Shown piece after piece: positions 3,446 through 55,198 of a DNA stretch of 64,000 bases. Origin of the DNA: Hamiltosporidium tvaerminnensis FI-OER-3-3 (Eukaryota; Fungi; Microsporidia); assembly GCA_022605425.2 (NCBI GenBank), contig JAKIMF020000004.1, positions 496,001-560,000 of the forward strand, given 5' to 3'. Each line of letters opens with the position of its first letter. Within the stretch, counting starts at the first letter, position 1. The translations under genes and the position numbers were made by a program. The notes beneath the pieces are model-generated. The model had not been told where the DNA came from, did not search any database, and saw only the letters and a list, made by a program, of their open reading frames with translations.

Positions 3446-3709
3446 TTTTTTTAAGGGTTAGAAAATATATTTTAATGAATTGGATTGAAGACCGTTGGAA
3501 ATTAAAAAATAGAAAAAAATATAATTGATGGGTGGTTTTTTAAGGAATAAAAAAATTAATTTTATATTTCTATATTTGAACATGTAAAAATTAAAAAATA
3601 AATGGAAATTAGAAAAAGAAGAAAGAAAATTTTCTATATTTGATAAATTAAAAAATAAATGGTAAATTATAATATTAGGAAATTAAAAAATTATGGAAAT
3701 TAGGAAAGG

Positions 3710-3886
3710 AAAAACGGTTTGGCGGTAAAATCACTTTGATAAATTATATAATAAATTAGGAAATGAAATTAAAAACTGTTTGGCGGTAAAATCACTTTGA
3801 TAAATTATATAATAAATTAGGAAATGAAATTAAAAACGGTTTGGCAGTAAAATCACTTTGATAAATTAAATAATAAATTAGGAAAT
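3710..3886. repeat. 61-bp VNTR (3 units here, 1 in cassette 2, 2 in cassette 3)
   Basis: AAAAACGGTTTGGCGGTAAAATCACTTTGATAAATTATATAATAAATTAGGAAATGAAATT three times. Confidence 0.9.
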
Positions 3887-5491
3887 TATTGGAAAAAAGT
3901 AAATTTAGATAGGAACTACCCAAAAAATTTATATATTTAATATTCAAAGATATAAATTTTAAAATAAATTGAAATTAGAAAGTAAATGTCTGAAAATCTG
4001 TATTTTTGATAAATTAAAATGAATAATAAAAGATTTAATTAAATTTTTAATTAAAGAGGAACATTTTTTCAAATTTTAAATTAAAAACAAATATGTTTGT
4101 TTTTATACAATGATGCTATCGTAAGGTACTTAATATTTTAAAACTGCAGAAAAAAATTGTAGAAAAATTAAATGAAATAATGTCTTCAGTTAGTTTTTAA
4201 AAAAAGAAGATAATAATTTTAAAGAATTATTTAAAAGTTACTTTATATGTAGATATATCACAAATTTAGGAATATATTTAGAAGAAATATCAGTAAACAT
4301 ATTCTTTGAAATTTTTGACATTGATATGGTTATATGACATTTAAATTATACCCATCATTTGTATTTTCAAAATAAATTAAAACTGAATATCAAATCCTTA
4401 GAACAAATTGAATACAAAAAGTGAAACAAATGGTTCTTTGTTAAATATCTGTTGAGGAATACACTACTCTTGATTGTCTGGATTGATTTACAATAGTGCT
4501 TATACTATCCAAGACTCACCATATTTTTCATAAACCGGCAACTGGTAAAGAGATACTTAGGTTTATGATGAAAGAAAAATATAGAAAATGAAATTTTTTT
4601 TCGACTTTCCTAAAATTTCTATAACTAGCTCGTAGACAAAAATAATATGGAATATTCGAAAAAAAAAAGATGTTTAATAATATTTTCAAGTTGAATATTT
4701 AAAATCCAAAAAAAATGATTTTTCAGATGCTTTAGTTAAGAAAATAAGTCAATGGATGTTTTTGTTCCAGAAAATCAGATTTTATGGAAATATAAAGTTG
4801 TTACTTTGAAGTAATTGTATGTTTGAGTTATTTAAGCTCGAAATTATTATAAAATTTTAGGATATTTTATTTAAAAATATAGCAAATTTTGATGAAAGTT
4901 GGTTCTTTTCTACGAATTGAAACAAAAAAAATGAATCGCCCAAATTAAAATAACATTTACTATTCTTTGTTAAAAATACATTTCACTTCATGTTTCATAT
5001 AATTTATAAGTTTTAAAATTATATTGTTTGGCTTCAATTTTGAAAAGCTGCTGGAATTGATGGTATCTAATTTTTCCATCGCGAAAATTGCTAATATGCG
5101 TAATATCAGTATTATTTTGCGAAAGTAATAGGCTACGAAAGAATAAATCTATTGTTTGGATCTTCATCGTGTCATGGATCAGATTCTCAAAAGACGACTC
5201 ACAACAAAGTTTTGCGTGGATATCAATTACTTTTATAAGTTGATACTCATTAAAACAGAAGTCAGCTTAAGTAAAATGTAAAACGATCTCTGTTTGGAAA
5301 AATCAGCCCAAAGTAAAAGGTATCTAAAAGTTCAAAGAGAATGCTGCGTTGGATTTTTCTCCTATTAAAAAATATAGAAACAACCAGGAATTGAGATCAG
5401 TTATAAAAAATCTAGGATTCTAAAAATACTAAAAAAACTCTCTGTTCAAATTCTAATTTAAATCGATTAAATATATCGAAATATTAATCTA

Positions 5492-6180
5492 TTGCGGAAA
5501 GAAAACACATCTGAAATTTTTTACTTTGTAATGGTTTAATGACATTTGTGGGAAAATTATTGTTTAAATTTTTGTTGGGATAAGATCCACATCCAATTTT
5601 TAGTGTTACCTGGCAATTTGTGTAAAGTACATATCTCAAAATGGCGAAATATTTATAAAGCTTAGATTTTACTTTTTAATATAACTAGATCGGAACTTAT
5701 GGAAAATACATTGTAAAGTATGTAAAATTTACCTGGTATACTCGATTAGAAGACTTGGCGCTCGTGAATCCAAAATATCTACTTTTAAAAATTCAAGAAT
5801 TTAAAGTAACAGGCTATGCTTGTTGATTTCAAATAACAATATACGATTGACTCTGTATGGCTCTATGAGAAATGTTTTAACGGAAGTCTTTCGGCCCGAA
5901 AGCTTAGGGTAAGCCGAAATGCTGCTGACATTGTTATCCCAAACTTGGATTCTACCCGAAATCACTCACTAAGCAAAGATCATTTAAGAACCTAAAGCAA
6001 CTTCTTCACTTATTAAAAAAGTTTTATAATCTTTCGATGAAATACATTGCGATGTATGTATCGAAAAATCACTGACAGTGTGTTGAGATTCATTTATCTA
6101 TTTTAAACCTTGAACTTCGTTAATGTCATGAAGAACATAACATTTGCAACTGTTTTAAAAAGATGTGATGTTTTTTAAAA
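5492..6180 (+). mobile_element. Old, diverged, apparently full-length relative of the structured SINE-like element at 17699-18430
   Basis: Collinear similarity from the 5' end through TTAGAAGACTT(G/A)GCGC and AATGCTGC to the 3' end (AAACCT.GAACT.CGTTAATGTCAT...AAAAGATGTGAT). Confidence 0.75.
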
Positions 6181-7022
6181 GAGTTTATAATTAAAATATA
6201 GGTAGGCAGTGGTTTTAACATATCTCTTTTTTGCTATATTTATCCCTATTAAATTTCCTTCTGTCATGATTAGTTTTTAACAATTAAATAATCGAATTTG
6301 TTTGCTTAAAAGATTAAATAATGTGTTTTAAGCATTGATACAAATAATTTCCACATATTTTTTTCGGATGATCAATTAAATTTAACTACTTATAAATTAA
6401 ATTTTTATTTCTACATGTTTTCTTTCTTATAATAGACATGTAATTTTTCGTTATTGTACATAAAAAAATATGCTTGTTCCTTCAAATTTGAAAGCTGCTT
6501 ATCATGAGTTAATTGTAAAAATTAGATTTCAAGATTAGATATACTGCCTTGATTTTTTTAACTAAAACTTTGTATTATTTATTCTGAATTCGAAAGATTT
6601 TCTAATGAACCTATATTAAACATTAGTTGAGTCGAGAAGCTCAACGACTATAAAAATGCCATGAAAATCAAGATTTTTTGTCGAAATATATTGATAAAAA
6701 CACAGACGTACAAAAATGTTTTAATATACGCCTAAATACCAGGATCTACGTGTTTCTGGGTAACTTATTCAAAAATACTATTTAATCAGTAATTTCTAAA
6801 TATTCAAATTTTTTAGGCCGAATTATGTTTTGAATTCTTTGAAAAAAAAGTATACTATTCCATTTGTGTGCAGAGTAAACCCTATGTTATATATTCCACA
6901 GGAAAAAGTATATGATTTATAAAAATATTTGATATATTAAATTAAAGTTTTTTAGGTCTTTAAAATTATAATTAAAATTAAATTGGAAATGATATATTCT
7001 ATGAATTTATTTGTAAATTTTT

Positions 7023-7895
7023 CTAATCTAAAAATGAAATGCCATCATAAATTCCATCAGCAATATGAAATCCAAGTATCTCCGAAGTAGACAATGATGT
7101 GATATCACCTTGATCGTGCGATTGCTGCACTTTTTTAAGTATACTTTCATCCAAAGTTTCGACTACGATGGTATCATAAGGGCCAATTTTTGGATTTTTT
7201 CTTTTTAAGCCATTACATAATATTTCATTGTCTGTTGGAATATTGTGATTTATTACACATGGCTTGTTAATTTTAACAGTTTTTTTACTTTGGACCTTGT
7301 TTTTTGTGGCTGAAGTATTATTTTTAGCAGATTTTTTATCTGTTTTGTTATGACGAATAATTTCCGGTTGATTGTTGGTATCTTGTGCCTCCAATTCATT
7401 TATTCCAGCTTCCATATTATCGTGACTAATCTCCGTAAATCCAAAAAAGGCTCCAATATCTTTAAAACATATATTTTTTCTTAATGTTGTAATAGTCTTT
7501 TCAGAAAATATATGTATACCATACAATGATATAGCAAATAATCTATAACTCTTTTGCCATTTTGAATAGCCGGTGGGTGTTCTTTTGTATTCTATGCCGC
7601 CATATACACATATAGGAAGCAAACACGAATTATATATCATCACAATGATTTTTTTTAAAAATTGTGCAAGTTTACATGTAATTTTATAATGCAAATAAAT
7701 AAGAAATAATATAGACTTAATAGTTCTCGTCCATGATTTTTCTAAAATGAATTTGACTATCTTTATCACCTTTGATATGACACCATACACAATAGCCATT
7801 TTTAAAACATAGACAATCATTTTAAATCCTACAAGAAGAATTGTGCTAATGAGCAAAATCAGGTTTTTCCTCAACCACGTGCTAGAAATATTCAT
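7023..7895 (-). CDS. Hypothetical protein 'family A' (290 aa), hydrophobic N-terminal half, paralog of the 299-aa gene
   Basis: Intact ORF in all three cassettes. Shares the LLPI.V.GG.E, YS.WQ, IHIF.E, NICFKDI and GDITS.STSEIL.F.I.DGI.DG.SFLD blocks with gene B. Confidence 0.85.
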   Translation of the reverse strand: MNISSTWLRKNLILLISTILLVGFKMIVYVLKMAIVYGVISKVIKIVKFILEKSWTRTIKSILFLIYLHYKITCKLAQFLKKIIVMIYNSCLLPICVYGGIEYKRTPTGYSKWQKSYRLFAISLYGIHIFSEKTITTLRKNICFKDIGAFFGFTEISHDNMEAGINELEAQDTNNQPEIIRHNKTDKKSAKNNTSATKNKVQSKKTVKINKPCVINHNIPTDNEILCNGLKRKNPKIGPYDTIVVETLDESILKKVQQSHDQGDITSLSTSEILGFHIADGIYDGISFLD

Positions 7896-9951
7896 TGTTT
7901 TGTTATTGTGTTTTTTTATTTATAGACAAAAATATAAACAAATTGTAATGAAACAATTATGTCTTATCTCTAAATATGTATCAAATAGATAAACTTAAAC
8001 AAAAAAAATCAAGGATTATTTATACTTTACTGATAAATCAATCAAAAATTATGAAATTTCAATCAAAACCATACAAAATTTGTCATAATAAATGAAATTT
8101 ATTAAAATTGGTGTATACTAGATCTTACGTCATTAATTCAAATTATCTATAAAAAATTTATAGTTTAAATTCACGTGACAACATATTGCATCATCTCAAT
8201 ATTATGTTTTTTTATTAATTCTTGTTATGTATTGCCAAAATATATTATATAACATTTTTGTCTCTGAAAGATCAAATCATCTTTTCATAGAATTTAAATC
8301 TCAAAAAGGAACATTTAATCTGTTTACATGTTCTCATAGAGCTAAACAATAGTAATTTAAATTTAAATACTTTATTTTACAATGATATAAGAAGGAATAT
8401 AAATTTTAAACATAAATTACTCAAGCAAAGCTTTTGATTTTTTTGCGGTTTAAGGCTGCATTCGGATCTGATATTAAGGAATGGGTTTTGCTCATTAGGC
8501 TTTTATCTAGGATATTTAATTATTTAAATCTACATAACATTTTGCTTGGAACAATATTCTAGAACAATACAAATCACGATCACATTATCAATTTATGGGG
8601 GAAAATAAAAAACTTTATCATTGAAATTTCCTAAAAAATACCTTTTAGATTTTTCACACATAAAATTTGAAACTAAAATTTATTTCAAATCATTTAGAAT
8701 AATAGCATTTCCTTGAATTTTGAATTTTAATACACATTTTTTGTTCTGAAATACAAATCTTGCTATAAATGTGTAACTATGTATTCTTAAAAGAGATAAA
8801 TTTTTATAATGCGATGGTCTAAACTGTGATTTCTTTCATTTTGCTTAAATTATGGAAATTACTTTAATAGAAAAAAAATTATACGTCCTTTCAATATTAG
8901 ATATGACGAGTTAACGATTTTTAAACACAATTATTCATAACATAAAACAAAGAATATTATTTAATTTTCCCGATGCTTATAAATATGTTCTGGTCGATTC
9001 CAGAATAATTGAAACAAAAAAAATGTTCGTTCTAAATTTTTAACCCGAAAGACTAAATTCACAATAGTTGATAAAAGATTGATAATATTTACTAGTTAAA
9101 AATTCTAATAATTTGTTCTGATTCGAACCTTATTTACTAATTTAAATTTTTTGTTAAATAATATATATACATTCAGTATAGTACGATCTAGATTTGGATT
9201 CGGCATTACAAAACTATAGACCGTGAGCCAAATCGAACCGTCATGAATTTTTTTGTACAGTAGGTGTTTTAAAATGGAAAATAAAATAAAAAAATATAAA
9301 TACATATACAAAAAAGTTCACAGCGTGAATAATTTTTATTATGAATTTGTAATACAATAAAGATATTTGGTTTTCAAGATTTTTTCAAACCTCTATCATA
9401 TTTCTTATTAATTATTGATTTAATCAAAGAATCTTATCAATAATTCCTTAAAAACGTAAGTCTAATTGACGTTTAAAATTTTTCATAAACTTCTTCGGTG
9501 GCTTATCTGTAAAATTTGGATCTGTTTTTTTTGTGCATTCCATTTTTGAAGTTGTTTTTTCATGCAGTAGGCAAAGCCAAAAGCGGAAACAAACCTTTGA
9601 GCAAATTATGAACGTGATGGCGTTGCGTGGCTGAAAAACTCTTATAAAAATTTGGTATTTGATTTTGATATTTTTATTTGAAAATGTTGTAAAGAATACA
9701 TTATAATTTAATTGAACATATGTATGAACGTTTTAGATTTCAGCCAAAATATTAATAATAAATATCGAGGTTATTCCAAAATCATTATCTATACCAAAAT
9801 CAAATTTCAAGTAAAAAAAATAAATTTAATGGAATTAATTTTTTTCTGCAAACTTTCTAATTATTAGAGTTAGATTTTTTCGTTCATATTCATGTTTTGG
9901 ATTTAAAAAATAAATTATATTTTTAGCCGATAAAAATTTTTTAAAAATAAA

Positions 9952-11280
9952 ATGAATTGCGACAAATATGAAATTAGAAGGCTTTAAAAATTTATATTTT
10001 CAAGAAATTTACCGTAAAATATGAATTGCAATCAGAAAAGATGCTTTATAAAACGAGAAGGCGATATATAGATCGAAAATGGTAAAATAATTAAAACGGA
10101 TATCAACTTTCATTAAAGAAGTTATAGCAGATTTGATAAATAAGCATAAACCAATTTTTTGCTTCTATAAATTTTTCTGGCTACATTAATATCTAAACGA
10201 ATGCATCAAGAAATCATAAGAAAATACTGCTGGTTTAAGCGAGAGAAAATAGAACTATTCGTTAAAACATGCCAAGATTGCCAGTATTATCAGACTTTAA
10301 GCGAAATGATGCAATTTGAACGATACCTCTAAATTATCCATGAGAAAGAATTCAGATGGATCTTGTTGATATGCGGAAATATTCAATGGATAATGATGGG
10401 GTTGGATAGATCTTACACACTTTAGATGCACACTCTAAATTTTTATTTGGGGCACCATTGCAAAAAAAATCAGGAGTGGTGTTGCAAATACGCTGAGAAA
10501 TCTTATTTAATTCGAAAGTGCGCCTAATATAATACAAACAGATAACGAATAGAAGTTTGTGTGTAACGAAATACAAATATATGTTGATCACAACATTTCT
10601 TTTATAACTGGAAGTGCAAAGTACATACAAAATCAAGGGAAAAAGAGAAATGCAACTAGACAATTATATGCAAACCTGATATAAATTTAAGAACATCTAG
10701 CCGAAAAAGATGGATCGATTTAAGTAAGAAATTTGTACATAGCTACAATCAGATTAGAGCAGGGCAATAAACATGACCCCAATGGCAGCAAGTATAGGTC
10801 TTATAGGCAAAAAATCTTATTACGAGGAAGATGCAATTCATAAAAAATATTTTTCAAGCTATGAATTGAAGAAATATCTTGAAAATACAGATCTAAACAT
10901 AAAAAGTCTCGTTATGAAGATAAAGTATATATCGAGGATAAAATATCTAATAAAATCGATATTATTCGACTGATCTCGCTAAAATATTGAGACTTATATG
11001 TATCTCGATGAAAAATGATGCGGATGTACACTTCTCTTGCTTAAAATTTACTTCTTGTGATGTGGCTCTACTAAAGAGAGATTTCGATAACAATCAAAAG
11101 ACTAAAAAAAGCAAAATTATTAACTTATATGAAGAGAGGTTCTAAAAAGTTGTTCTCAGAAGTAGCGGCGATAAATTTTTATACAGTGTGACGACAAGCA
11201 GAAAATTATTTGCAAAAATCGAATTAAGAAGTATCATGAAAATGAATTATCTCATCTTCACAAAAACACGAATGATTAAA
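9952..11280 (+). pseudogene. Decayed retroviral-type (rve) DDE integrase/transposase, KRBA2/SCAND3/Ginger-like
   Basis: Fragments separated by stops and frameshifts: MHQEIIRKY...FVKTCQDCQ (zinc-binding end), ERIQMDLVDMRKYS..NDG, ILHTLDAHSKF..GAPLQKKS, PNIIQTDN, QNQGKRE, RAINMTP, LLKRDFDNNQKTKK. Confidence 0.85.
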
Positions 11281-11970
11281 TTCCGCTTCTGAATATCTAC
11301 AGTTTGTTTCTTTTAAAGTAACATTTTTCCATTATTTTTCATTTTAACTTCTTAATGATTGTTTTTTTGTTTTCTACTTCCTTGCATTTCTTAAAGTAAA
11401 AAAAATATAAGAATATAAGAGAAATATTAAATGATGATAAAATGGCTTAAAAAGGAATTGGAGTGATTAAAGTAATTTTTTTATAAATTGAAATCATAAA
11501 ATGTTTTTAGAGCTTTATGTGAAATTTCTTTTATGGATGTAGAATCGGTTTGAAATAAACATGAAAAAGTACTTTTCAATATGTTGGTTTAAAGGCTAAT
11601 GGGTTCATGACCCTCTAGACTTTTTATAGAACTAAATAAAGCTTACTGAATAAAAAGTTTTGTGGCTCTTAGTGTAAACGCTATTTTAAATTTTAGATCA
11701 AATATCATTATATCCTAGAGAACAATTTCGGCTGTTTCGAAATAATCTAGATACTAATTATGAATTTTTGGCATATTAAGTTTCATATTTTTCGAAACTA
11801 GATTAATACACAAAAAATTTTATTGGTTTGTTTTATAATAAATTATTTTCATAATTTTGATAAAATTTACCAATTTATTTGATATCAAAGATAAGGGGAA
11901 TATGTTCAAATCTAATTTGTTCTCTATTTTCAGAAAAATATAATAGACGGAAATAATAGTAGTAACAAAA

Positions 11971-12870
11971 ATGCGCATCGACAATATAATAATCTTGATT
12001 TTTTTTACTATTCCATCTGAAGTTTTAAAATCAATTTTATACTTGACAAATATCGGCATTGAATACAATTTGATTACGAAAATTATGAAATTTATAGACA
12101 TTTTTCTCTGTTATATTTTAAATCCAGTTGTAAAAGTAATAATATTTGCCGTCCGAATACATTGTTTTTTTATATTACAAACCAAGGAAATAATTAAAGT
12201 TATCATCCTGTTTTTGTATAAAAAATATTTGCTGCCTATTTTTGTTCTGGGAGGTCTCGAATGTAGAAATAGATCCATTAGTTATTCACTTTGGCAAAGA
12301 TATTATAAAATATTTGCTATGACAACATATAAAATACATATATTTATTGAAAATTTTGTATTCCAAATTCGAAGAAATATATGTTTTAAAGACATATGTA
12401 CATATCTTGGATTTCCACTCAATTTAGAATCTGTTGATATGGTTGCAGAATTAGAAAGACCTAGCCTAATTCAGGATGTTGAGACTAAGGGCATTTTAAA
12501 GCCTAAAACCTGTGTCGAAAAGGAAAACTCTCATATTTATAATGAAGCAAATGATATTCCTAAAAAAAATTACAACGCGATATTGAAAAATCAAAAACAG
12601 ATACAGAAAACTGTAAAAATCGAAGAAATCACAATAAATAATAATGAAATCGTAGATAAAGAAAAAAAATTTAGTAGCGGGCCAAACGAAAAAATATCAA
12701 CAGTGCCGCTTCTTACTGTACACGATTTGAACAGTTCGAATGTTAACACATTAAAAAAAATACAAGCTGCTCGAAATCGAGGGGATATAACATCCATGTC
12801 AACATCTGAAATACTTGCGTTCAACATCGTCGATGGTATTTTCGACGGTGTTTCTTTTTTAGACGAATAA
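11971..12870 (+). CDS. Hypothetical protein 'family B' (299 aa), paralog of the 290-aa gene
   Basis: Intact ORF in all three cassettes, with motifs shared with gene A. Confidence 0.85.
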   Translation: MRIDNIIILIFFTIPSEVLKSILYLTNIGIEYNLITKIMKFIDIFLCYILNPVVKVIIFAVRIHCFFILQTKEIIKVIILFLYKKYLLPIFVLGGLECRNRSISYSLWQRYYKIFAMTTYKIHIFIENFVFQIRRNICFKDICTYLGFPLNLESVDMVAELERPSLIQDVETKGILKPKTCVEKENSHIYNEANDIPKKNYNAILKNQKQIQKTVKIEEITINNNEIVDKEKKFSSGPNEKISTVPLLTVHDLNSSNVNTLKKIQAARNRGDITSMSTSEILAFNIVDGIFDGVSFLDE

Positions 12871-13639
12871 ATTATAAATTTTTTGTCATTTATTTTTAAA
12901 TTAAATTACAAAAGAATCAAAAATAATAAAAACATTTTATAATTAATTTTTTTTTGTTTTTTGTCTAATAATTTATGTTTAAATACAAAAATATAAATAG
13001 CGAATTCGAAGTTTAATTTTATACAATCTTTTAACAAGGGAATACTTATTTGAAGTAATCAAAAAATTTATGAAAAGCAAAAAAATAGTACTAATAAAAC
13101 ATAGAATTTAAATAATAAAAGTAGTTTTGTAAACAAAATAAAACAATCCTTTTATAGTGGTGTTTGTATGCTAATCGAATCTCTCCCTCTAATAAATCAC
13201 TTTTAAACTCAAGAAATATAATTTATAATCGAGCATTATAACATTGGTTTTTCTATTTAATTACCGTTTCTGTAAAATAAGATAAGAGTAAATATATGTT
13301 CTATTATGAATAAGCTTATTTTCAATGGGAAAATTTATAACAATATTATTAAAATGCTAAAAATACTTATATGTCTCTTTTCTATACGCTTTATAAATCA
13401 CTATATCAATTATTCTATATTTGACACAAAACTTGACTTTTCATTAGTAACTTCTGCTTTGAATATATCATTGGAATTTTTAGATTCTGTATTTATTTAT
13501 TATTTGGAATCTTTTTTTTGGCCAAATATTTTATGAAAGAGAGAGCAAAACTTAGTATGTTTTTCTATCTTTTGCCTGCTTCGAATCTACATTTAGTAAT
13601 ATCAAAGAAGTTAGTTAGATGTTTATAGTTGCTGTTCTG

Positions 13640-14760
13640 AATTAGAAGAAATGATATGCAAGATTTTAAGCGACCATCAACTCTATCAAGCCTATATAGT
13701 TATTTATATTTCACTTCGTAAGTTTTTTCTTATAATATTATGCAATCATATCATCCCGAGATTTGATTAAACAAGAGTTCTACTTCAAAATTTATAGAAG
13801 AATCATAAAAACTTTAATTTCTTTGTTTTTAATGTTTGAAATAATTAAGTAAAAATCAAAATAACAAAAAGGTGTCTTTCTAGAATTAACTTAACAATCC
13901 AAATATATATGATTTTGTATCCTGGCTTTTTAAATCTGTTTTTTATTAGTTTCGTTTTTTCCGCATACTTTTTTTTGAAAAGCCAGGCTCTGTGTGAACT
14001 TATTCGTTTTGCAAAAATTAAATTTTATTTATTTTTTGGTGTGAAATAAACACAGAGAGCTCTTCGTTCCACCTTCTGTACATATAGATGTATTTTTTTC
14101 AAACTTGGAGTCAAAATTTTATAACATTACTTGATTTATTATTTTATTGAGATATTTTTTCTGATTTGTATAACACATATCTTTTTAGATTATTAAAATA
14201 CTGCTTCATCTCATATTTAATTTTTAATGTCCTGTCGTATTTCAGATAGCCTTAATATAACGCTGGTTAATGGCATTTGCCTTTATTTATCTTTGAATGT
14301 AATTTTTGATTGTCTATTTCGTCATATAAATTTTTTATTTAAGCGTTTTAAATTTGATCTAATAAAAATCTCTAATATAATATATTTGACCAGTTTAACG
14401 TTTATTATTGAGGCTAGATATCCTTATTACTATTAATTATTTTTAAGGTTGTCTTTTTAAGTCGAAATTCAACACATTCTTCCAAAAATGTAAGAAACAA
14501 GACCTTAGGTCGACTTTAAAGGCAAAAATACAGCAGTTTATTTCCAGATTCTGTTCTACCTAAGCTTTATTCGTTGTTATACAAGTGATTTTTTTTAATT
14601 ATAAAAAAAATGCATTTCTTAATGACATTCCAGCAACTTTCTTAGCTACATCTAAAAAAATCAGAAGTTTTTTTATTACACACTCTATAATCTTTTGAAG
14701 TATGAAGATTTATTGAGTTAGAAAACAAGTTTAAAAATTATAGCAAGAATATTCGGATAT
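13640..14760 (-). mobile_element. Ancient degenerate 3' fragment of an R4/Dong-like LINE related to the junction elements
   Basis: Broken-frame peptides LGRTESG, VDLRS, KNLYDEIDNQKLHSK, DEAVF, YRRWNE, AKRISSH, IKTDLK are collinear with LPRTELG, VELRS, KLYNEIEKRKLHSK, NEAVF, YTRRHNE, SKRIRSH, IKTDVK of the junction LINEs. Confidence 0.8.
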
Positions 14761-14817
14761 TTTCTTGAAAAAAACACGATTACAGCAGTATTGTTTTAAA
14801 TAAAAAATCATAAAAAG

Positions 14818-14963
14818 TTTTCTTCTCAAAAGAGACAATTTGATAGAAATATCAAATTTAAATAAAATTTAAAACAATTCTACCTAGCTATTTTCTTCTA
14901 CAAAAGAGAAAATTTGATAGAAATATCAAATGTAAATAAAATTTAAAACAATTCTACCTAACA
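14818..14963. repeat. ~72-bp tandem duplication private to cassette 1
   Basis: TTTTCTTCT(A)CAAAAGAGA.AATTTGATAGAAATATCAAAT.TAAATAAAATTTAAAACAATTCTACCTA twice; single in cassettes 2 and 3. Confidence 0.85.
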
Positions 14964-17639: not shown

Positions 17640-17698
17640 TTTTTTATGCAAATCTAGGGTATATTTTTTTAAATGAAGTATTACTATTATTATGGTAT

Positions 17699-43528: not shown

Positions 43529-44401
43529 CTAATCTAAAAATGAAATGCCATCATAAATTCCATCAGCAATATGAAATCCAAGTATCTCCGAAGTAGATAA
43601 TGATGTGATATCACCTTGATCATGCGATTGCTGCACCTTTTTAAGTATAGTTTCATCCAAAGTTTCTACTACGATGGTATCATAAGGGTCAATTTTTGGA
43701 TTTTTTCTTTTTAAGCCTTTACATGATATTTCATTGTCTGTTGGAATATTGTGATTTATTACACATGGCTTGTTAATTTTAACAGTTTTTTTACTTTGGA
43801 CCTTGTTTTTTGTGGCTGAAGTATTATTTTTAGCAGATGTCTTATCTGTTTTGTTTGGACGAATAATTTCCGGTTGATTGTTGGTATCTTGTGCCTCCAG
43901 TTCATTTATTCCAGCTTCCATATTATCGTGACTAATCTCCGTAAATCCAAAAAAGGCTCCAATATCTTTAAAACATATATTTTTTCTTAATGTAGTAATA
44001 GTCTTTTCAGAAAATATATGTATACCATACAATGATATAGCAAATAATCTATAACTCTTTTGCCATTTTGAATAGCCGGTGGGTATTCTTTTGTATTCTA
44101 TGCCGCCATATACACATATAGGAAGCAAACACGAATTATATATCATCACAATGATTTTTTTTAAAAATTGTGCAAGTTTACATGTAATTTTATAATACAA
44201 GTGAATAAGATAAAATATAGACTTAATAGTTCTCGTCCATGATTTTTCTAAAATGAATTTGACTATCTTTATCACCTTTGATACGACACCATACACAATA
44301 GCCTTTTTTAAAACATAGACAATCATTTTAAATGCTACAAGAATAATTGTGCTAATGAGCAAAATCAGGTTTTTCATCAACCATGTGCTAGAAATATTCA
44401 T
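43529..44401 (-). CDS. Hypothetical protein family A (copy 3)
   Basis: 290-aa intact ORF. Confidence 0.85.
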   Translation of the reverse strand: MNISSTWLMKNLILLISTIILVAFKMIVYVLKKAIVYGVVSKVIKIVKFILEKSWTRTIKSIFYLIHLYYKITCKLAQFLKKIIVMIYNSCLLPICVYGGIEYKRIPTGYSKWQKSYRLFAISLYGIHIFSEKTITTLRKNICFKDIGAFFGFTEISHDNMEAGINELEAQDTNNQPEIIRPNKTDKTSAKNNTSATKNKVQSKKTVKINKPCVINHNIPTDNEISCKGLKRKNPKIDPYDTIVVETLDETILKKVQQSHDQGDITSLSTSEILGFHIADGIYDGISFLD

Positions 44402-46507
44402 TGTTTTGTTATTGTGTTTTTTTATTTATAGACAAAAATATAAACAAATTTCAATGAAACAATTATGTCTTATCTCTAAATATGTATCAAATAGATAAAC
44501 TTAAACAAAAAAAATCAAGGATTATTTATACTTTACTGATAAATCAATCAAAAATTATGAAATTTCAATCAAAAACATACAAAATTTGTCATAAAAAATG
44601 AAATTTATTAAAATTGGTGTATACTAGATTTTACGTCATTAATTTAGATTATTTATAAAAAATTTATAGTTTAAATTCACGTGACAACATATTGCATCAT
44701 CTAATATTATGTTTTTTTATTAATTCTATTTATGTATTACCAAAATGTATCATATAACATTTTTGTCTCTGAAAGATCAAATCATTTTTTTCATAGAATT
44801 TAAATCTCAAAAAGGACCATTTAATCTGTTTACATGTTCTCATAGAGCTAAAAAATAGTAATTTAAATTTAAATACTTTATTTTGCAAATATATAAGAAG
44901 GAATATAAATTTTAAACATATATTTACTCAAGCAAAGCTTTTGATTTTTTTGCGGTTTAAGGCTGCATTCGGATATGATATTAAGGAATGGGTTTTGCTT
45001 ATTATGCTTTTATCTAGGAATATTTATTTATTTAAATCTACAGAACATTTTGCTTGGAACAATATTCTAGAACAATACAAATCACGATCACATTATCAAT
45101 TGATGGGGGAAAATAAAAAACTTTATCATTGAAATTTCCTAAAAAATACCTTTTAGATTTTTCACATATAAAATTTGAAACCAAAATTTATTTCAAATTA
45201 TTTAGAATAATAGCATTTCCTTGAATTTTGAATTTTAATACACATTTTTTGTTCGAAAATACAAATCTTACTATAAATGTATGACTATGTATTCCTAAAA
45301 GAGATATATTTTTATAATGCGATGATCTAAACTGTGATTTCTTTCATTTTGCTTGAATTATGGAAATTGTTTAATAGAAAAAAATTAGACGTCCTTTCAA
45401 TATTAGATATGACGAGCTAACGATTGTTAAACACAATTATTCATAACTTAAAACAAGGAATATTATTTAATTTTCCCGATGCATATAAATTTGTCTGGTC
45501 GATTCCAGAATAATTAAAACAAAAAAAAATGTTCGTTCTAAATTTATAAGATATCTAAATTTATATTTAGATAATCTATTCAGACAGTATATTTATAACC
45601 CGAAAGACTAAATTCATAATTTTGGATGTAAGATTGATAATATTTACGAATTTAAAAGTTCTAATAATTTGTTCTGATTCGAACCTTATTTACTAATTTA
45701 AATTTTTTGTTAAATAATATATATACATTCAGTATAGTACGATCTAGATTTGGATTCGGCATTACAAAACTATAGACCGTGAGCCAAATCGAACCGTCAT
45801 GAATTTTTTTGTACAGTAGATGTTTTAAAATGGAAAATAAAATAAAAAAATATAAATACATATACAAAAAAGTTCACAGCGTGAATAATTTTTATTATGA
45901 ATTTGTAATACAATAAAGATATTTGGTTTTCCAGATTTTTTCAAACCTCTATCATATTTCTTATTAATTATTGATTTAATCAAAGAATATTATCAATAAT
46001 TCCTTAAAAACGTAAGTCTAATTGACGTTTAAAATTTTTCATAAACTTCTTCGGTGGCTTATCTGTAAAATTTGGATCTGTTTTTTTTGTGCATTCCATT
46101 TTGGAAGTTGTTTTTTCATGCAGTAGGCAAAGCCAAAAGCGGAAACAAACCTTTGAGCAAATTATGAACGTGATGGCGTTGCGTGGCTGAAAAACTCTTA
46201 TAAAAATTTGGTATTTGATTTTAATATTTATATTTGAAAATGTTGTAAAGAATACATTATAATTTAATTGAACATATGTATGAACGTTTTAGATTTCAGT
46301 CAAAATATTAATAATAAATATCGAGGTTATTCCAAAATCATTATCTATACTAAAATCAAATTTCAAGTAAAAAAAATAAATTTAATTGAATTAATTTTTT
46401 CCTGCAAACTTTCTACTTATTAGAGTTACATTTTTTCGTTCATATTCATGTTTTGGATTTAAAAAATAAATTATATTTTTAGCCGATAAAAATTTTTTAA
46501 AAATAAA

Positions 46508-47830
46508 ATAAATTGCGACAAATATGAAATTAGAAGGCTTTAAAAATTTATATTTTCAAGAAATTTACCGTACAATATGAATTGAAATCAGAAAAGATGC
46601 TTTATAAAACGAGAAGACGATATATAGATTGATAATGGTAAGATAATTAAAACGGATAGCAACTTTCATTAAAGAAGTTATAGCAGATTTGATAAATAAG
46701 CATAAACCAATTTTTTGCTTCTATAAATTTTCTTGGCTACATTAATATTAAACGAATGCATCAAGAAATCATAAGAAAATACTGCTGGTTTAAGTGAGAG
46801 AAAATAGAACTATTCGTTAAAACATGCCAAGATTGCCAGTATTATCAGACTTTAAGCGAAATGATGCAATTTGAACGATACCTCTAAATTATCTATGAGA
46901 AAGAATTCAGATGTATCTTGTTGATATGCGGAAATATTCAATGGATAATGATGGGGTTGGATAGATCTTACACTCTTTAGATGCACACTCTAAATTTTTA
47001 TTTGGGGCACCATTGCAAAAAAAATCAGGAGTGGTGTTGCAAATACACTTAGAAATCTTTTTATTTCGAAAGTGGCCTAATATTCTACAAACAGATAACG
47101 AATAGAAGTTTGTGTGTAACGAAATACAAATATATGTTGATCACAACATTTCTTTTATAACTGGAAGTGCAAGGTACATACGAAATCAAGGGAAAAGGAG
47201 AAATACAACTAGACAATTATATGCAAACCTGATATAAATTTAAGAACATCTAGCCGAAAAAGATGGATCGATTTAAGTAAGAAATTTGTACATAGCTACA
47301 ATCAGATTAGAGCAGGGCAATAAACATGACCCCAATGGCAGCAAGTATAGGTCTTATAGGCAAAAAATCTTATTACGAGGAAGATGCCATTCATAAAAAA
47401 TATTTTTCAAGATATGAATTGAAGAAATATCTTGAAAATACAGATCTAGACATAAAAAGTGTCGTTATGAAGATAAAGTATATATCGAGGATAAAATATC
47501 TAATAAAATCGATATTATTCGACTGATCTCGCTAAAATATTGAGACTTATATGTATCTCGATGAAAAATGATGCGGATGTACACTTCTCTTGCTTAAAAT
47601 TTACTTCTTGTGATGTGGCTCTACTAAAGAGAGATTTCGATAACAATCAAAAGACTAAAAAAAGCAAAATTATTAACTTATATGAAGAGAGGTTCTAAAA
47701 AGTTGTTCTCAGAAGTAGCGGCGATAAATTTCAAACAGTGTGACGACAAGCAGAAAATTATTTGCAAAAATCGAATTAAGAAGTATCATGAAAATGAATT
47801 ATCTCATCTTCACAAAAACACGAATGATTT
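46508..47830 (+). pseudogene. Decayed rve integrase (copy 3)
   Basis: Duplicate of 9952-11280. Confidence 0.8.
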
Positions 47831-48521
47831 AATTCCGCTTCTGAACGTCTACAGTTTGTTTCTTTTAAAGTAATTTTTTCCAGTATTTTTCATTTTAACT
47901 TCTTAATGATTGTTTTTTTGTTTTCTACTTCCTTGCATTTCTTAAAGTAAAAAAAATATAAGAATATAAGAGAACTATTAAATGTCGATAAAATGGCTTA
48001 AAAAGGAATTGGAGTGAGTAAATGAATTTTTTTATAAATTAAAATCATAAAATGTTTTTATAGCTTTCTGTGAAATTTCTTTTATGGATGTAGAATCGGT
48101 TTGAAATAAACATGAAAAAGTACTTTTCAATATGTTGGTTTAAAGGCTAATGGGTTCATGACCCTCTAGACTTTTTATAGAACTAAATAAAGCTTACTGA
48201 ATAAAAAGTTTTGTGGCTCTTAGTGTAAACGCTATTTTAAATTTTAGATCAAATATCATTATATCCTAGAGAACAATTTCGGCTGTTTCGAAATAATCTA
48301 GATACTAATTATGAATTTTTGGCATATTAAGTTTCATATTTTTCGAAACTAGATTAATACACAAAAAATTTTATTGGTTTGTTTTATAATAAATTATTTT
48401 CATAATTTTGATAAAATTTACTAATTTATTTGATATCAAAGATAAGGGGAATATGTTCAAATCTAATTTGTTCTCTATTTTCAGAAAAATATAATAGACG
48501 GAAATAATAGTAGTAACAAAA

Positions 48522-49421
48522 ATGCGCATCGACAATATAATAATCTTGATTTTTTTTACTATTCCATCTGAAGTTTTAAAATCAATTTTATACTTGACAA
48601 ATATCGGCATTGAATACAATTTGATTACGAAAATTATGAAATTTATAGACATTTTTCTCTGTTATATTTTAAATCCAGTTGTAAAAGTAATAATATTTGC
48701 CGTCAAAATACATTGTTTTTTTATATTACAAACCAAGGAAATAATTAAAGTTATCATCCTGTTTTTGTATAAAAAATATTTGCTGCCTATTTTTGTTCTG
48801 GGAGGTCTCGAATGTAGAAACAGATCCATTAGTCTTTCGCTTTGGCAAAGATATTATAAAATATTTGCTATGACAACATATAAAATACATATATTTATTG
48901 AAAATTTTGTATTCCAAATTCGAAGAAATATATGTTTTAAAGACATATGTACATATCTTGGATTTCCACTCAATTTAGAAGCTGTTGATATGGTTGCAGA
49001 ATTAGAAAGACCTAGCGTAATTCAGGATGTTGAGACTAAGGGCATTTTAAAGTCTACAACCAGTGTCGAAAAGGAAAACTCTAATATTTATAATGAAGAA
49101 AATGATATTCCTAAAAAAAATTACAACTCGATATTGAAAAATCAAAAACAGATACAGAAAACTGTAAAAATCGAAGAAATTACAATAAATAATAATGAAA
49201 TCGCAGATAAAGAAAAAAAATTTAGTAGCAGGCCAAACGAAAAAATATCAACAGTGCCGCTTCTTACTGTACACGATTTGAACAGTTCGAATGTTAACAC
49301 ATTAAAAAAAATACAAGCTGCTCGAAATGGAGGGGATATAACATCCATGTCAACCACTGAAATACTTGCGTTCAACATCGTCGATGGTATTTATGACGGT
49401 GTTTCTTTTTTAGACGAATAA
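48522..49421 (+). CDS. Hypothetical protein family B (copy 3)
   Basis: 299-aa intact ORF. Confidence 0.85.
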   Translation: MRIDNIIILIFFTIPSEVLKSILYLTNIGIEYNLITKIMKFIDIFLCYILNPVVKVIIFAVKIHCFFILQTKEIIKVIILFLYKKYLLPIFVLGGLECRNRSISLSLWQRYYKIFAMTTYKIHIFIENFVFQIRRNICFKDICTYLGFPLNLEAVDMVAELERPSVIQDVETKGILKSTTSVEKENSNIYNEENDIPKKNYNSILKNQKQIQKTVKIEEITINNNEIADKEKKFSSRPNEKISTVPLLTVHDLNSSNVNTLKKIQAARNGGDITSMSTTEILAFNIVDGIYDGVSFLDE

Positions 49422-50189
49422 ATTATAAATTTTTTGTCATTTATTTTTAAATTAAATTACAAAAGAATCAAAAACAAAAAAAACATTTTATAATTAATCT
49501 TTTTTGTTTTTTGTCTAATAATTTATGTTTAAATATCAAAATTTAAATAGCAATTCGAAGTTTAATTTTAAACAATCTTTTAACAAGGGAATACTTATTT
49601 GAAGTTGTCAAAGAATTTATGAAAAGCAAAAAAATAGTACTAATAAAACATAGAATTTTAAATAATAGAGTAGTTTTGTAAACCAAATAAAACAATCCTT
49701 TTACATTGGTGTTTGTATACTAAATCAAATCTTTCTCTCCAATAAATCACTTTTAAACTCAAGAAATATAATTTATAAATGAGTATTATAACACTGGTTT
49801 TTTTATTTAATTACCGTTTCTGTAAAATAAGAAAAGAGTGTATTATGTTCTATTATGAATAAGCTTATTTTCCAGGGGAAAATTTATAAAGATATTATTA
49901 AAATGCTAAAAATACTTGTTAGTCTCTTTTCTATACGCTTTATAAATCACTATATCAATTTATTCTATATTTGGCACAAAACTGGACTTTTCATTAGTAA
50001 CTTCTGACTTTGAATATATCATTGGAATTTTTAGATTCTGTATTTATTTATTATTTGGAATCTTTTTTTTGGCCAAATATTTTATGAAAGAGAGAGCAAA
50101 ACTTAGTATGTTTTTCTATCTTTTGCCTGCTTCGAATCTACATTTAGTAATATCAAAGAAGTTAGTTAGATGTTTATAGTTGCTGTTCT

Positions 50190-51310
50190 GAATTAGAAGA
50201 AATGATATGCAAGATTTTAAGCGACCATCAACTCTATCAAGCCTATATAGTTATTTATATTTCACATCGTAAGTTTTTTCTTATAATATTATGCAATCAT
50301 ATCATCCCGAGATTTGATTAAACAAGAGTTCTACCTCAAAATTTATAGAAGAATCATAAAAACTTTAATTTCTTTGTTTTTAATGTTTGAAATAATTAAG
50401 TAAAATTCAAAATAACAAAAAGGTGTCTTTCTAGAATTAACTTAACAATCCAAATATATATGATTTAGTATTCTGGCTTTTTAAATCTGTTTTTTATTAG
50501 TTTCGTTTTTTCCGCATACTTTTTTTTGAAAAGCCAGGCTCTGTGTGAACTTATTCGTTTTGCAAAAATTAAATTTTATTTATTTTTTGGAGTGAAATAA
50601 ACACAGAGAGCTCTTCGTTCCACCTTCTGTACATATAGATGTATTTTTTTCAAACTTGGATGTCAAAATTTTATAACATTACTTGATTTATTATTTTATT
50701 GAGATATTTTTTCTGATTTGTACAACACATTTCTGTTTTAGATTATTAAAATACTGCTTCATCTCATTCAAATTTTCAATGTCCTGTCGTATTTCAAAAA
50801 GCTTTAATATTACGCTGGTCAATGGAATTTGCCTTTATTTATCTTTGAATGTAATTTTTACTTGTCTATTTCGTCATATAAATTTTTTATTTAAGCGTTT
50901 TAAATTTGATCTAATAAAAATCTTTAATATAATATATTTGACTAGTTTAACGTTTATTATTGAGGCTAGATATCCTTATTACTATTAATTATTTTTAAGG
51001 TTGTCTTTTTAAGTCGAAATTAAACACATTCTTCCAAAAATGTAAGAATCAAGACCTTAGGTCGACTTTAAAGGCAAAAATACAGCAGTTTATTTCCAGA
51101 TTCTGTTCTATCCAAGCTTTATTCGTTGTTATACAAGTGATTTTCTTAATTATAAAAAAAATGCATTTCTTAATGACATTCCAGCAACTTTCTTAGCTAC
51201 ATCTAAAAAAATCAGAAGTTTTTTTATTACACACTTTATAATCTTTTGAAGTATGAAGATTTATTGATTTAGAAAACAAGTTTAAAAATTATAGCAAGAA
51301 TATTCGGAAT
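50190..51310 (-). mobile_element. Ancient LINE 3' fragment (cassette 3 copy)
   Basis: Duplicate of 13640-14760. Confidence 0.75.
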
Positions 51311-51724
51311 ATTTTCTCGAAAAAAACACGACTAAGGCAATATTGTTTTAAATTAAAAATCATAAAAAATTTTCTTCTACAAAAGAGACAATTTGATAGA
51401 AATATCAAATGTAAATAAAATTTAAAACAATTCTACCTAACAATTTTCTTTCTAAAAAAGAGAGCAACCGTATTTCAGCTCATCAAAATATTAAAAAAGA
51501 TAATTTAATTAGAAATACGAGAATAATTGCGTAAATTTAGAAAATAGTACCGAAGAAATCGATTCTAGATTCTACATCTTAAGAATTAATTAAAATTAAA
51601 ATATTTAAAATATATTATATTTAATCAAAATAATAAAATTAAAACTGATTGAAATGAATAATTAGAATATTTAAATAATTGTTTAATATTCAACTATTGA
51701 GATATAATTATAGAAATAGAATAT

Positions 51725-54118
51725 TTATATAACAATTTGGTAATTGTCTCTTTCTTTTTTTATCAAATATCCTTGATGGTTTAATAATTCTATAATCTCC
51801 TGTGAGCTTTTTTTCATTTCGAAATTGTTCAATTCATTTATTAATTCCATATAACTTAAAACGGTTTTTTTTGTATTAATTGCTAGATTTTTTAGATGCG
51901 TTATAATATCTTTAACATTATTTCCTTTCTTTTTATTTGTATTTGTGGTATTTTTAGAAGAAAAATTCATACTTTTTTTGTAAAAATTTACAATAAATTC
52001 TGCATCTTTTTGATTTGCAATCATTCTTAATTCTGTTTTAGCCTTCGCTTCTGTAAGTCGCATTAAAGCTTCCAAATGTCTTATTCCGACATTTTCTTTG
52101 TTTCTTATACTCAAATAAAAAGTTTTTAAAATATTTTTTGCTTGTGTTGAAAGAATTGGATTTACGTATTCTCTAGCATAAGAAATATATTTAGAAATAA
52201 GTTCTTTTTGATACAACACTGTTTCTGTATTCATTTTTAGATTTTGTGTTATATCATTTCTTAATATTCCAATCATTTCAGATATTTTATTATCAGATCT
52301 TTCCGTTGAAATAGCTGAGGATGTTTTTTTTGAATCGTTATTTATGATGTATTTCGATAATTCTTGATTATAATTTTCATCTAAATTATCTTTTAAAACA
52401 AATATTAAATCAAATCTTGATAAAAGAGCTTCATTAAAATTTAGATTTTCTTTCAACGTTTTATTTTCTTTGAAAAATCCATATTTTGGATTCGTAGCAC
52501 TTATTATTGTTGTGCGAGCCGGAACAGTACATATTACTCCTCCTTTGGCTATTGTAAAAGACTGTTGCTCCATTATTTCATATAAAACTTTAAAATCATT
52601 TAATTTATCGAATTCATCAAGGCAACACACACTATTATCAGAAATTACCAAAGCACCTGCATCTACCACATATTCAGATGTAATAGGATCATGTATCATG
52701 GAAACTGTCAGACCAGCACTTGTTGTAGAACTACCGCATATAAAAGTACTTTTTGGAAGAATTTCTGATGTCAAAGTTAAAAATTTACTTTTTCCAAGTC
52801 CAGGTTCTCCTATCAATAACACATGTATTTCTTTTCTAATACAAGTATTTCCACAAAATTTTTTTGTACCTCCAAATAAACTCAAAACGATTCCAATTTT
52901 AATCAATTCATTTCCATAAATATTTTTAAATAAAGAATGTGCCAATGAACAAATTATATTTTTATTTCTCGAAATATCTTTAAAGACGTTGAAATCAGAA
53001 TCTTTGGTTTCCTTTTTCAGATTTAAAATGTTTTTATTTTTCAATATTTTTAAATTATTTACGTAAATATTTAATTTATAAAGGCCGTTACTTTCTTTTT
53101 CAGCTTTAATTATTCCAATTACTGAAACTACATCTCCAGGAACTACCGTGTTTACTAAGTCATCAAATAAATAACAATCTGTCATATTCAGTTTTTTTGT
53201 GTTTTCATAATCATTATCAATTTCTTTAAACCCGAAATCTTTATTTTTAAGTTCATTAGCACAATTCATATCAATTTTTTCTTTTGAATCTTCATTTGAA
53301 TCATAATAATATTCACTACTATTCTCTTTATATTCTTCATCACACTTCAAATCAATACTTTGCTTTCTATTTTCATTTATTTCATTAAATTCTTTGTTTT
53401 TGTTTATAGCAAATTTTTCTTTTGATTTTTCGTTTGTTTCTTTAAAATCCAAATCCAAATTTATTTCGCTATTTTCATCTGAAAAATCAAAAATATTTTC
53501 AAAATTACCACAATAATTCTGATAATTTGGTATTTCTTGGATTTTAATTTCTTGAAAATCTTTAATAAGCAGCTCGGGATGATCATTTAAAAAGACAAAT
53601 TTTTTAGATTTACAACCACCAACACATTTCTTTGGTGTTTTATACACATTAGACACAATTTTAATTTCAAGTATTTCTTTACATTTCAAACATTCAAAAA
53701 ATACTTTTTTAAAAATAAGTTTTTTACATCCAACACGACACACAGTACCTATAAGACTAACAAGATGCTCTACCTTACTAACCGACACACCAAAAGAAGA
53801 AACAATATTATAATTTGTTATACGAATACCAACATACATCTTAATATCATATTCGTTATAAATTATTTCTGAAACAGCACATGCAATACATTTTATTGTA
53901 TTTTCTGGTTGCTCATAAATTTGATTTTTTGATATAATTTTTACTAAAAAACGCATGCTTATTTTGTAAATACCTCGCTCTTTTATTATAAGAATTTTGT
54001 TTGTTACATTATTTCTTAATGTTCGTATAAATTTAATAATTGTTTCATAATTTGTATTGAAAAATGTAAATTCATCTTTATCAAAATATAAATCCCAAGA
54101 TGAAATGTGCGGATGCAT
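51725..54118 (-). CDS. MCM8: DNA helicase MCM8 (copy 3)
   Basis: Intact ORF with the same motifs; first ATG at 54118. Confidence 0.88.
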   Translation of the reverse strand: MHPHISSWDLYFDKDEFTFFNTNYETIIKFIRTLRNNVTNKILIIKERGIYKISMRFLVKIISKNQIYEQPENTIKCIACAVSEIIYNEYDIKMYVGIRITNYNIVSSFGVSVSKVEHLVSLIGTVCRVGCKKLIFKKVFFECLKCKEILEIKIVSNVYKTPKKCVGGCKSKKFVFLNDHPELLIKDFQEIKIQEIPNYQNYCGNFENIFDFSDENSEINLDLDFKETNEKSKEKFAINKNKEFNEINENRKQSIDLKCDEEYKENSSEYYYDSNEDSKEKIDMNCANELKNKDFGFKEIDNDYENTKKLNMTDCYLFDDLVNTVVPGDVVSVIGIIKAEKESNGLYKLNIYVNNLKILKNKNILNLKKETKDSDFNVFKDISRNKNIICSLAHSLFKNIYGNELIKIGIVLSLFGGTKKFCGNTCIRKEIHVLLIGEPGLGKSKFLTLTSEILPKSTFICGSSTTSAGLTVSMIHDPITSEYVVDAGALVISDNSVCCLDEFDKLNDFKVLYEIMEQQSFTIAKGGVICTVPARTTIISATNPKYGFFKENKTLKENLNFNEALLSRFDLIFVLKDNLDENYNQELSKYIINNDSKKTSSAISTERSDNKISEMIGILRNDITQNLKMNTETVLYQKELISKYISYAREYVNPILSTQAKNILKTFYLSIRNKENVGIRHLEALMRLTEAKAKTELRMIANQKDAEFIVNFYKKSMNFSSKNTTNTNKKKGNNVKDIITHLKNLAINTKKTVLSYMELINELNNFEMKKSSQEIIELLNHQGYLIKKERDNYQIVI

Positions 54119-55198
54119 TCTTTTATGCAAATCTAGGGTATATTTTTTTAAATGAAGTATTACTATTATTATGGTATGAAGATTTAATTATGTTTGAAAA
54201 TGTAGAATGTAAGTGTATTATTAAATGTTGTTTAAATGTTATTTAAATATTTTAATTTTTATTAAAAAAAATCTTTACTGATTCTTAAAAAATTTTTATT
54301 TATAAATATTTTTAGCAATTTAGATTGGATTTTTATTAGAAATAAAAAATAATAATTTTAATGTATGGTATGACAATTTAATTCTTTATTGAGGTTTTGA
54401 TTATTTTTATATCTATGTCGTTTATATTAGATTATTTTTCTTATTTTTTATATTAATCTTTTGATTTTGAGCCTTCCATCTCTTTGAATTAACTATTTAA
54501 AAATTTACTTTTTACAGGTGTATTATTGGCATTTTTAATATGTAAAATGTATGTATTAGGCATAATCTTCTTTATTTGTATAATATTCTGGGAATCTCTT
54601 TCTAAGTAAAAACTTTATTTTTGTATCTATCTCATTCTCTTTTAAAACTTAAAAAAACTCGTTTTTGTGAATTTTTTTATATTCTTGAGAGCTAAGTCTC
54701 TTTATATATATGATGAATGAGACCGTCTTAGGATCATCTGCTAACATTTCATTACAATAAACCAAATAATAATTACGTTAATTTATATTTAAAATTATAT
54801 GTGTAAATAATGTTTATCTCATTGCTAAAAAGACACGTTTCCTCAATAAAGTTATATTAAATTTTTTAATAAGAATTAAACATACGATTTTATCATAATT
54901 TATACTCATATGTTTACTTAAATGCTTCGTGATTTATTTGAACTAAAAAGTCAAGGTAGGTTTTTTAAATAAATATTTTTGTTTATATAGAGATTGAATT
55001 TATTTTATATCGAATTCAGAAAATTAGAACAGCATTTTTTCAAAAACGATTCTCATTATAAGTAAAAATAATTTTGAGCTTTTCTTAAAGTTTAAAATTA
55101 AATTTTTCTGATCCGAAATAGATTTTTCATTTATAAATCGATAAGCGGAGTTATTGGCAGTAAAATATTTCTATTAAATATTTCTTTGAAAACCATCT

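Follow-up and report, generated by a model that had tools for sequence, protein, structure and literature searches.

Two full-length LINEs bridge a triple tandem array of an MCM8 cassette in Hamiltosporidium tvaerminnensis, with a possible origin in a single retrotransposition event

Three direct cassettes are joined by two full-length LINEs

In the microsporidian Hamiltosporidium tvaerminnensis (strain FI-OER-3-3), three direct copies of a cassette with the MCM8 helicase gene follow one another, and a full-length long interspersed nuclear element (LINE) occupies each of the two joints between the copies. The array lies within the stretch of DNA analysed here (hereafter the window), which comprises 64,000 nucleotides of contig JAKIMF020000004.1 (positions 496,001 to 560,000 of the forward strand; assembly GCA_022605425.2). 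The three cassettes (U1 to U3) measure 14.07–14.23 kb and show a substitution identity of 97.3–97.8% among them. The evidence that ties the LINE to the duplication is strong. As to how the array began, we put at about an even chance a start by one retrotransposition event that joined the end of the cassette to its start, either as a target-site duplication (TSD) of kilobase scale or as a LINE-bridged unequal exchange.

The layout was obtained from a self-BLAST of the window and from alignments of the six boundaries (Table 1). Homology between the cassettes starts with TTTGATAAATT, right after the ATG of the LINE (CAT on the plus strand), and ends with ...GGATTTTTATT, right before the LINE 3' end. 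At the two outer boundaries (3638/3639 and 54337/54338) different DNA follows, with no LINE at either of them. In the junction alignments, all four inner junctions and both outer boundaries correspond to the LINE termini with single-base precision. The original prediction, made from the letters of the window alone, had described a cassette-LINE-cassette-LINE-cassette order with the same breakpoints at each joint and unique, LINE-free outer ends, and this description was borne out to the base. In the 21.6-Mb genome, the last 2.8 kb of the cassette have only three occurrences and the right flank has one. The left breakpoint is located at the edge of a variable 61-bp minisatellite, each unit of which repeats the breakpoint motif TTTGATAAATTA.

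Table 1. Positions of the array components and of the features within and around them, numbered from the first letter of the window
Feature	Coordinates	Strand	Remarks
Left flank	1..3638		Unique, without LINE; minus-strand open frame of at least 1152 aa (2..3457), starting ~190 bp from the cassette boundary
Cassette U1	3639..18604	+	14.2 kb without its private 732-bp insertion
LINE1	18605..22382	-	3778 bp, full length; 3' end abuts the end of U1, ATG abuts the start of U2
Cassette U2	22383..36454	+	
LINE2	36455..40241	-	3787 bp, full length; ATG at 40239-40241; junctions identical to those of LINE1
Cassette U3	40242..54337	+	
Right flank	54338..64000		Unique; 360-aa open reading frame (ORF), SRP54 gene, Med18-like gene
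61-bp minisatellite	3710..3886		~70 bp inside the cassette start; 2.9 units in U1, ~1 in U2, 2.2 in U3 (40300-40432)
290-aa ORF	7023..7895; 25642-26514; 43529-44401	-	Intact in all three cassettes
299-aa ORF	11971..12870; 30639-31538; 48522-49421	+	Intact in all three cassettes
MCM8, U1	15246..17639	-	797 aa from ATG
MCM8, U2	33842..36235	-	Intact
MCM8, U3	51725..54118	-	Intact
732-bp element	17699..18430		G+C-rich, non-coding, U1 only; 60 bp upstream of the MCM8 ATG; 14-bp TSD TATTATTATGGTAT

The array is found in independent sequence data

The published near-chromosome assembly of H. tvaerminnensis has 21.64 Mb in 17 contigs with 26.6% G+C, and was produced by merging Oxford Nanopore (ONT; read N50 32.7 kb) and PacBio continuous long read (CLR) assemblies with quickmerge, followed by manual curation (PMC10542269). 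The genome behind the window comprises 21,638,905 bases, also in 17 contigs. Independent contigs and k-mer depth confirm that the triple array is real and that its junctions exist. A 7.8-kb contig (L033) from an older short-read assembly of H. tvaerminnensis (GCA_004325075.1) contains the end of U2, the whole of LINE2 and the start of U3, with 99.4% identity to the window (47 substitutions and 2 indels), and a contig from another older short-read assembly of the species, GCA_004325045.1 (L034), covers the U1-specific insertion and the 5' part of MCM8 at 99.6%. In the Logan contigs of a public run (X15), the sequence branches at position 54337, one branch leading into the LINE 3' end and the other into the flank. 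In the same contigs the end of the 732-bp insertion is joined at 54164, and letters specific to U1 and to U2 were detected at 9 of 10 variant sites. The k-mer depth of this run averaged approximately 1940–2220 over the cassette with respect to 775–985 over the flank, a ratio of 2.2–2.9. As the cassette copies are 1–2% apart, a collapsed depth below threefold is expected for three copies, and two copies could not exceed twofold.

A partial assembly artefact, in which the true locus would be a single U-LINE-U and the third cassette and second LINE would represent the other haplotype or a duplicated merge, has only a slim chance of being correct. Merging with quickmerge and curation by hand leave room for such an error, the depth over the cassette falls short of a clean threefold value, and the differences between copies are variants of an allele-like kind. 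On the other hand, LINE1 and LINE2 differ by 4.2%, and the 732-bp insertion is found in U1 alone. Moreover, three junction contexts appear in independent data, namely a cassette end with the insertion (L034 and X15), a cassette end without it followed by LINE2 (L033), and a cassette end running into the flank. A depth above twofold could not come from two collapsed, diverged copies, the letters specific to U1 and to U2 are both present in X15, and the ONT reads, with their N50 of 32.7 kb, are long enough to span the cassette.

Contigs of runs X15 and X13 also contain a "go-back" joint in which window position 55255 is followed by one C and then by position 54244, at full single-copy depth in X15. 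This joint may correspond to a similar A+T-rich stretch elsewhere.

The LINE belongs to a family with short target-site duplications

Young genomic copies of the LINE contain a single ORF of 1253 aa that begins at the first base of the element. In the array, the ORF of LINE1 is shortened to 1074 aa (19158..22382) and that of LINE2 is in pieces. A reverse transcriptase (RT) domain was identified in the LINE1 ORF; for the family, the RVT_1 domain scored E=1e-27, and matches in the Protein Data Bank include the RT cores of both L1 ORF2p and R2. The C-terminal part of the ORF of young copies contains the motif CX2CX8HX4C at residue 976 followed by RPD-x14-E, the restriction-like endonuclease (RLE) pattern of the R2/R4 group, and no APE domain was found in a Pfam search of the ORF. 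The definition of this endonuclease by a CCHC motif plus PD-x(12-14)-D/E is said to come from Yang, Malik and Eickbush in 1999. From these motifs, we classify the element as a putative single-ORF LINE of the RLE type.

The genome contains at least 35 long copies of this LINE, of which 29 were fetched for junction comparison. At least 27 of them start with ATGGGTAGAA and 28 end with ...AAATAA, and their flanks are unrelated to each other; this combination of shared termini and differing flanks shows that the LINEs of the window extend to the genuine termini of the family. No single specific target sequence, such as the ribosomal DNA (rDNA) used by R4 or the TAA repeats used by Dong, was recognised in the flanks of the 29 copies. 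The first base of the 3' flank is nevertheless an A in 27 of the 29, and the 3' flank in the array begins with AAT. TSDs of 11–21 bp were identified in 20 ordinary full-length copies, accompanied by 0–14 extra bases at the 5' junction, and TSDs of 11–18 bp in about six truncated copies, with none above 21 bp among the approximately 27 copies scored. Around the LINEs of the array no short TSD was found, the best match being one of 4 bp at LINE1, and the only direct repeat that flanks them is the cassette itself, approximately 700–1000 times the norm for the family. The link between LINE and duplication that had been proposed from the sequence is therefore upheld, since the breakpoints are both termini of the LINE and the ordinary short TSD is missing.

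Additional observations were made on the family as a whole. In a protein search with the LINE1 ORF, close homologues were found nearly all in H. tvaerminnensis, with a handful in its sister species H. magnivora, which suggests that the family may have expanded mainly in the former. In one H. magnivora copy (L038), with an identity of 91.5%, the ATG is replaced by CTG. A 5' untranslated region shared by this copy and LINE1 was considered on the basis of a 43-bp match upstream of the ATG, and was rejected as a weak A+T-rich extension. At the 5' junction of a further copy (L026, C7:857336-861139) the first 16 bases of the element are duplicated (ATGGGTAGAAAGAAAA twice) between the TSD and the element. 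Head-to-tail LINE-LINE pairs exist at C9:86026-93444 and at C4:925587-930786, with only about 85 bp between the copies, and one such pair consists of an old, 82%-identical copy and a young one.

Three long minus-strand LINEs of another subfamily (approximately 94% identical to the young copies) are located at C4:492930-524230 (L067, L068), spaced by 14,075 and 14,120 bp. Their flanks are 99–100% identical, and the same sequence of at least 1.5 kb follows each LINE. The locus was evaluated as a second LINE-punctuated array, and LINE-free ends were not observed, as its 3' flank occurs there three times only and always beside a LINE; it represents a near-identical tandem repeat that contains LINEs. 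A single 97% copy of this 3' flank is present at C14:954259-955558, and no LINE-free fourth copy was found on C4.

Divergence of the copies and comparison with H. magnivora

In a tree built from 31 copies, LINE1 and LINE2 group as nearest neighbours. They are 95.8% identical to each other, with identities to other members of their subfamily (94.3–95.3%) hardly below that value. Only seven derived sites are exclusive to the two, which does not exceed the number for random pairs of the subfamily. With substitutions polarised by agreement among the other LINE copies, lineage-specific change amounted to 1.65% for LINE1 and 1.83% for LINE2, compared with 1.8–2.1% for three of four other members and 3.2% for the fourth (L005), and to 0.9–1.65% for the non-coding part of the cassette. 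Rates per G/C site were similar to rates per A/T site. The similarity of LINE and cassette change implies either that the step from two to three copies took place soon after the insertion, or that the array arose at once.

Along the cassettes, the pair of copies that agree changes from block to block, a mosaic that would fit repeated exchange or gene conversion. An origin of U2 by one simple crossover would make U3 the sister of its left part and U1 that of its right part; this was rejected, as the ends show the opposite relation and the interior is a mosaic of many blocks.

In two H. magnivora assemblies (L031 and L032), MCM8 leads directly into the right flank, without the LINE and without the 732-bp element, and contig 1 of run X13 likewise passes from MCM8 into the right flank without a LINE. 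Such an unbroken crossing suggests that a branch from the cassette end into the LINE does not exist in H. magnivora. The H. magnivora contigs over the left part of the cassette (L036 and L037) end inside the minisatellite, short of the left junction. Over the compared parts of the cassette, the two isolates differ by 1.7–3.8% from each other.

Genes of the cassette and the insertion private to U1

The product of the cassette MCM8 gene contains the MCM OB, P-loop, lid and MCM8 winged-helix domains and is 99% identical to the H. tvaerminnensis Mcm8 protein TBU11463.1; protein look-ups by exact sequence with the three copies returned no match. The gene is intact (797 aa) in all three cassettes, with a synonymous divergence (dS) between copies of 2.2–3.6% and a ratio of nonsynonymous to synonymous divergence (dN/dS) of 0.07–0.19. 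Such a low ratio indicates that purifying selection has acted on the copies or on the alleles from which they descend.

The 732-bp element of U1 was inserted after the duplication. Both GCA_004325045.1 and run X15 contain it, and the H. magnivora contigs do not. Its 14-bp TSD falls within the TSD sizes of the LINE family, and the element is likely a non-autonomous partner of the LINE.

Two segments of the cassette have relatives elsewhere. For the one at 46342-48092 in the window, with its counterparts in U1 and U2, at least 15 dispersed copies with 67–73% identity were found on many contigs, and they could represent either a multigene family or an ancient mobile element. The other, at 48235-49787 (containing the 299-aa ORF), has an inverted copy of 1.55 kb with 95% identity at C13:563668-565226, approximately 3.7 kb past the end of the window. 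Contigs L031 and L032 of H. magnivora terminate within this segment.

Possible origins of the array

The single-event origin, the molecule that supplied the second DNA end and the order of events are inferred as follows. The RLE would have nicked the plus strand at ...GGATTTTTATT^AGAAAT, at that time the boundary between a single cassette and the right flank. Reverse transcription would have been primed at this nick, and the whole RNA would have been copied up to its first base, at the ATG. The end of the complementary DNA (cDNA) would then have been joined 14 kb "behind" the nick, at the cassette start beside the 61-bp minisatellite, instead of the usual 11–21 bp away. The partner end could have come from the sister chromatid or the homologue, or from the same duplex through extensive unwinding or through break-induced replication, and the minisatellite at the left breakpoint is a plausible source of it. 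The product would have been left-U-LINE-U-right, that is, a TSD of 14 kb. The second LINE and the third cassette would have followed soon after by unequal exchange between the 14-kb repeats, and later gene conversion would have generated the present mosaic. We favour a single event because the LINE is complete, its two junctions have the form usual in the family, the 3' junction is at a typical target and there is published precedent (see below). Of the two models advanced in the original prediction, the giant TSD, or its modern form of LINE-bridged unequal exchange or break-induced replication, fits somewhat better than recombination between LINEs on two homologues, and neither is proven.

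A more far-reaching version of this origin, in which the LINE recurrently completes integration kilobases away from its first nick and the triple array, with its two LINEs without exclusive shared mutations, came from one replicative event, strikes us as quite unlikely. If it were true, retrotransposition would, through such recurrent distant integration, routinely drive the tandem amplification of genes in the expanded genome of this microsporidian.

Several alternatives to a single retrotransposition event have to be considered. Rather unlikely, in our view, is an origin in which two full-length LINEs of the same subfamily and orientation were inserted at opposite ends of the cassette on homologous chromosomes, so that a crossover within them gave left-U-LINE-U-right plus a reciprocal deletion, with the third copy added by later unequal exchange. 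Such a crossover yields exactly the observed structure, LINE-free outer ends included, leaves both junctions like ordinary junctions of the family, and, by joining different homologues, would account for the cassette variants that are also polymorphic between H. magnivora isolates. It demands, however, that a small subfamily, represented by only about six of the scored copies, inserted twice at full length within 14 kb of a 21.6-Mb genome, and that a crossover fell within 3.8 kb. No allele with a LINE at one end only was seen, and H. tvaerminnensis is regarded as asexual. We find it distinctly improbable that the LINE acted as a filler, its cDNA being captured independently of the endonuclease at the junction of a tandem duplication produced by replication or double-strand-break repair, for example at the minisatellite. 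Capture of retroelement cDNA at breaks is known in yeast and in mammalian cells, and the left breakpoint is indeed at the edge of the variable minisatellite whose unit repeats the breakpoint motif. Captured cDNAs, however, are usually truncated and without target preference, whereas the LINE here is full length down to the terminal bases, and the sequence at its 3' end matches the usual targets of the family (a leading A, as found in 27 of the 29 copies).

A later insertion of the LINE into a pre-existing U-U tandem junction would have had to hit that junction base-exactly at both ends, and neither LINE has a short TSD in a family that makes them of 11–21 bp; the location of the breakpoints at the LINE termini together with the missing short TSD leaves this explanation a negligible probability. 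Recombination in cis between flanking LINEs, a form of non-allelic homologous recombination (NAHR), requires repeats at both outer ends and is excluded, as these ends are LINE-free. Read-through transduction was also discarded, as it does not give a U-LINE-U-LINE-U layout.

The following points weigh against the origin that we favour. The depth ratio of 2.2–2.9 does not cleanly separate two copies from three, and no empty, single-copy or intermediate U-LINE-U allele was seen directly. The survey of TSD lengths suggested with the original prediction gave a consistent 11–21 bp for ordinary copies, with none longer among the approximately 27 scored, and no second giant TSD was revealed by L002, L003 and L005, three further old copies whose 3' flanks proved unique in the genome. 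In each region compared with H. magnivora, only two sites distinguish the three H. tvaerminnensis copies jointly from both isolates. Moreover, many sites that vary between the copies are also polymorphic between the two H. magnivora isolates, specifically 34 of 132 in the right 4.9 kb and 42 of 130 in the left 3.9 kb, that is, 26–32% of the copy-variable sites with a chance expectation of about 2–5 sites. This shared polymorphism is at odds with an origin from identical copies on sister chromatids, and it suggests either that a homologue was involved in forming or converting the array, with capture of different ancestral alleles, or that H. magnivora itself is multicopy and its contigs are mixtures. 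Under either reading the divergence between copies is not a clock, and dating of the duplication from it was dropped for this reason. The shared polymorphism also speaks for a step between homologues and keeps the model of recombination between LINEs on two homologues alive.

Comparison with known systems

The closest parallels to the array come from human L1. The original prediction had assumed that TSDs of LINEs and other non-LTR elements are only up to tens of base pairs long, a view that is now outdated: L1 insertions have been described at the junctions of tandem duplications of 1–10 kb, where they are called large TSDs (bioRxiv 10.1101/2024.12.14.628481), and an L1-associated duplication of 22.6 Mb has been ascribed to the invasion of a broken sister chromatid by L1 cDNA (PMC7058536). 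As in the H. tvaerminnensis array, these cases in cancers and L1-expressing clones have a single LINE at a direct tandem junction with its 3' end at an endonuclease-type target, their outer ends are LINE-free, and the duplication itself stands in for the TSD. They differ in that the human element is of the APE type and its insertions are somatic, usually 5'-truncated and polyadenylated. The array of H. tvaerminnensis contains a full-length single-ORF LINE, putatively of the RLE type, without a poly(A) tail. It is inherited in a unicellular parasite, has three copies with all genes intact, and is known from its product alone.

Duplications produced by NAHR between flanking transposable elements (TEs), by which L-U-L becomes L-U-L-U-L (L being the element), resemble the array in the alternation of repeats and cassettes, and the changes in copy number and gene conversion expected from them agree with the mosaic that was seen. 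The resemblance ends at the outer boundaries, which are LINE-free in the array, so that only a trans form of this mechanism, with insertions on different homologues, would be possible. With respect to elements of the R2/R4/Dong type, the LINE has in common the single ORF, the RT, the C-terminal CCHC followed by PD...E, the lack of a detected APE domain and a fixed short size of TSD. Unlike them, the LINE of the array is not site-specific and shows only a preference for A as the first base of the 3' flank, and the likeness is one of motifs and not of placement in a clade.

The tandem duplications associated with L1 in tumours and cell clones are somatic dead ends, whereas in H. tvaerminnensis the product has been kept, with three intact MCM8 genes and two other ORFs per copy. 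The locus thus offers a concrete case for asking whether retrotransposition itself, beyond later recombination between repeats, enlarges the genomes of large-genome microsporidia, and it allows the sister species and different isolates to be compared for empty, intermediate and amplified states. In any case, LINE-bridged tandem duplication is already known from human L1, and the array described here appears to be a heritable example of it in a different class of LINE and a different organism.

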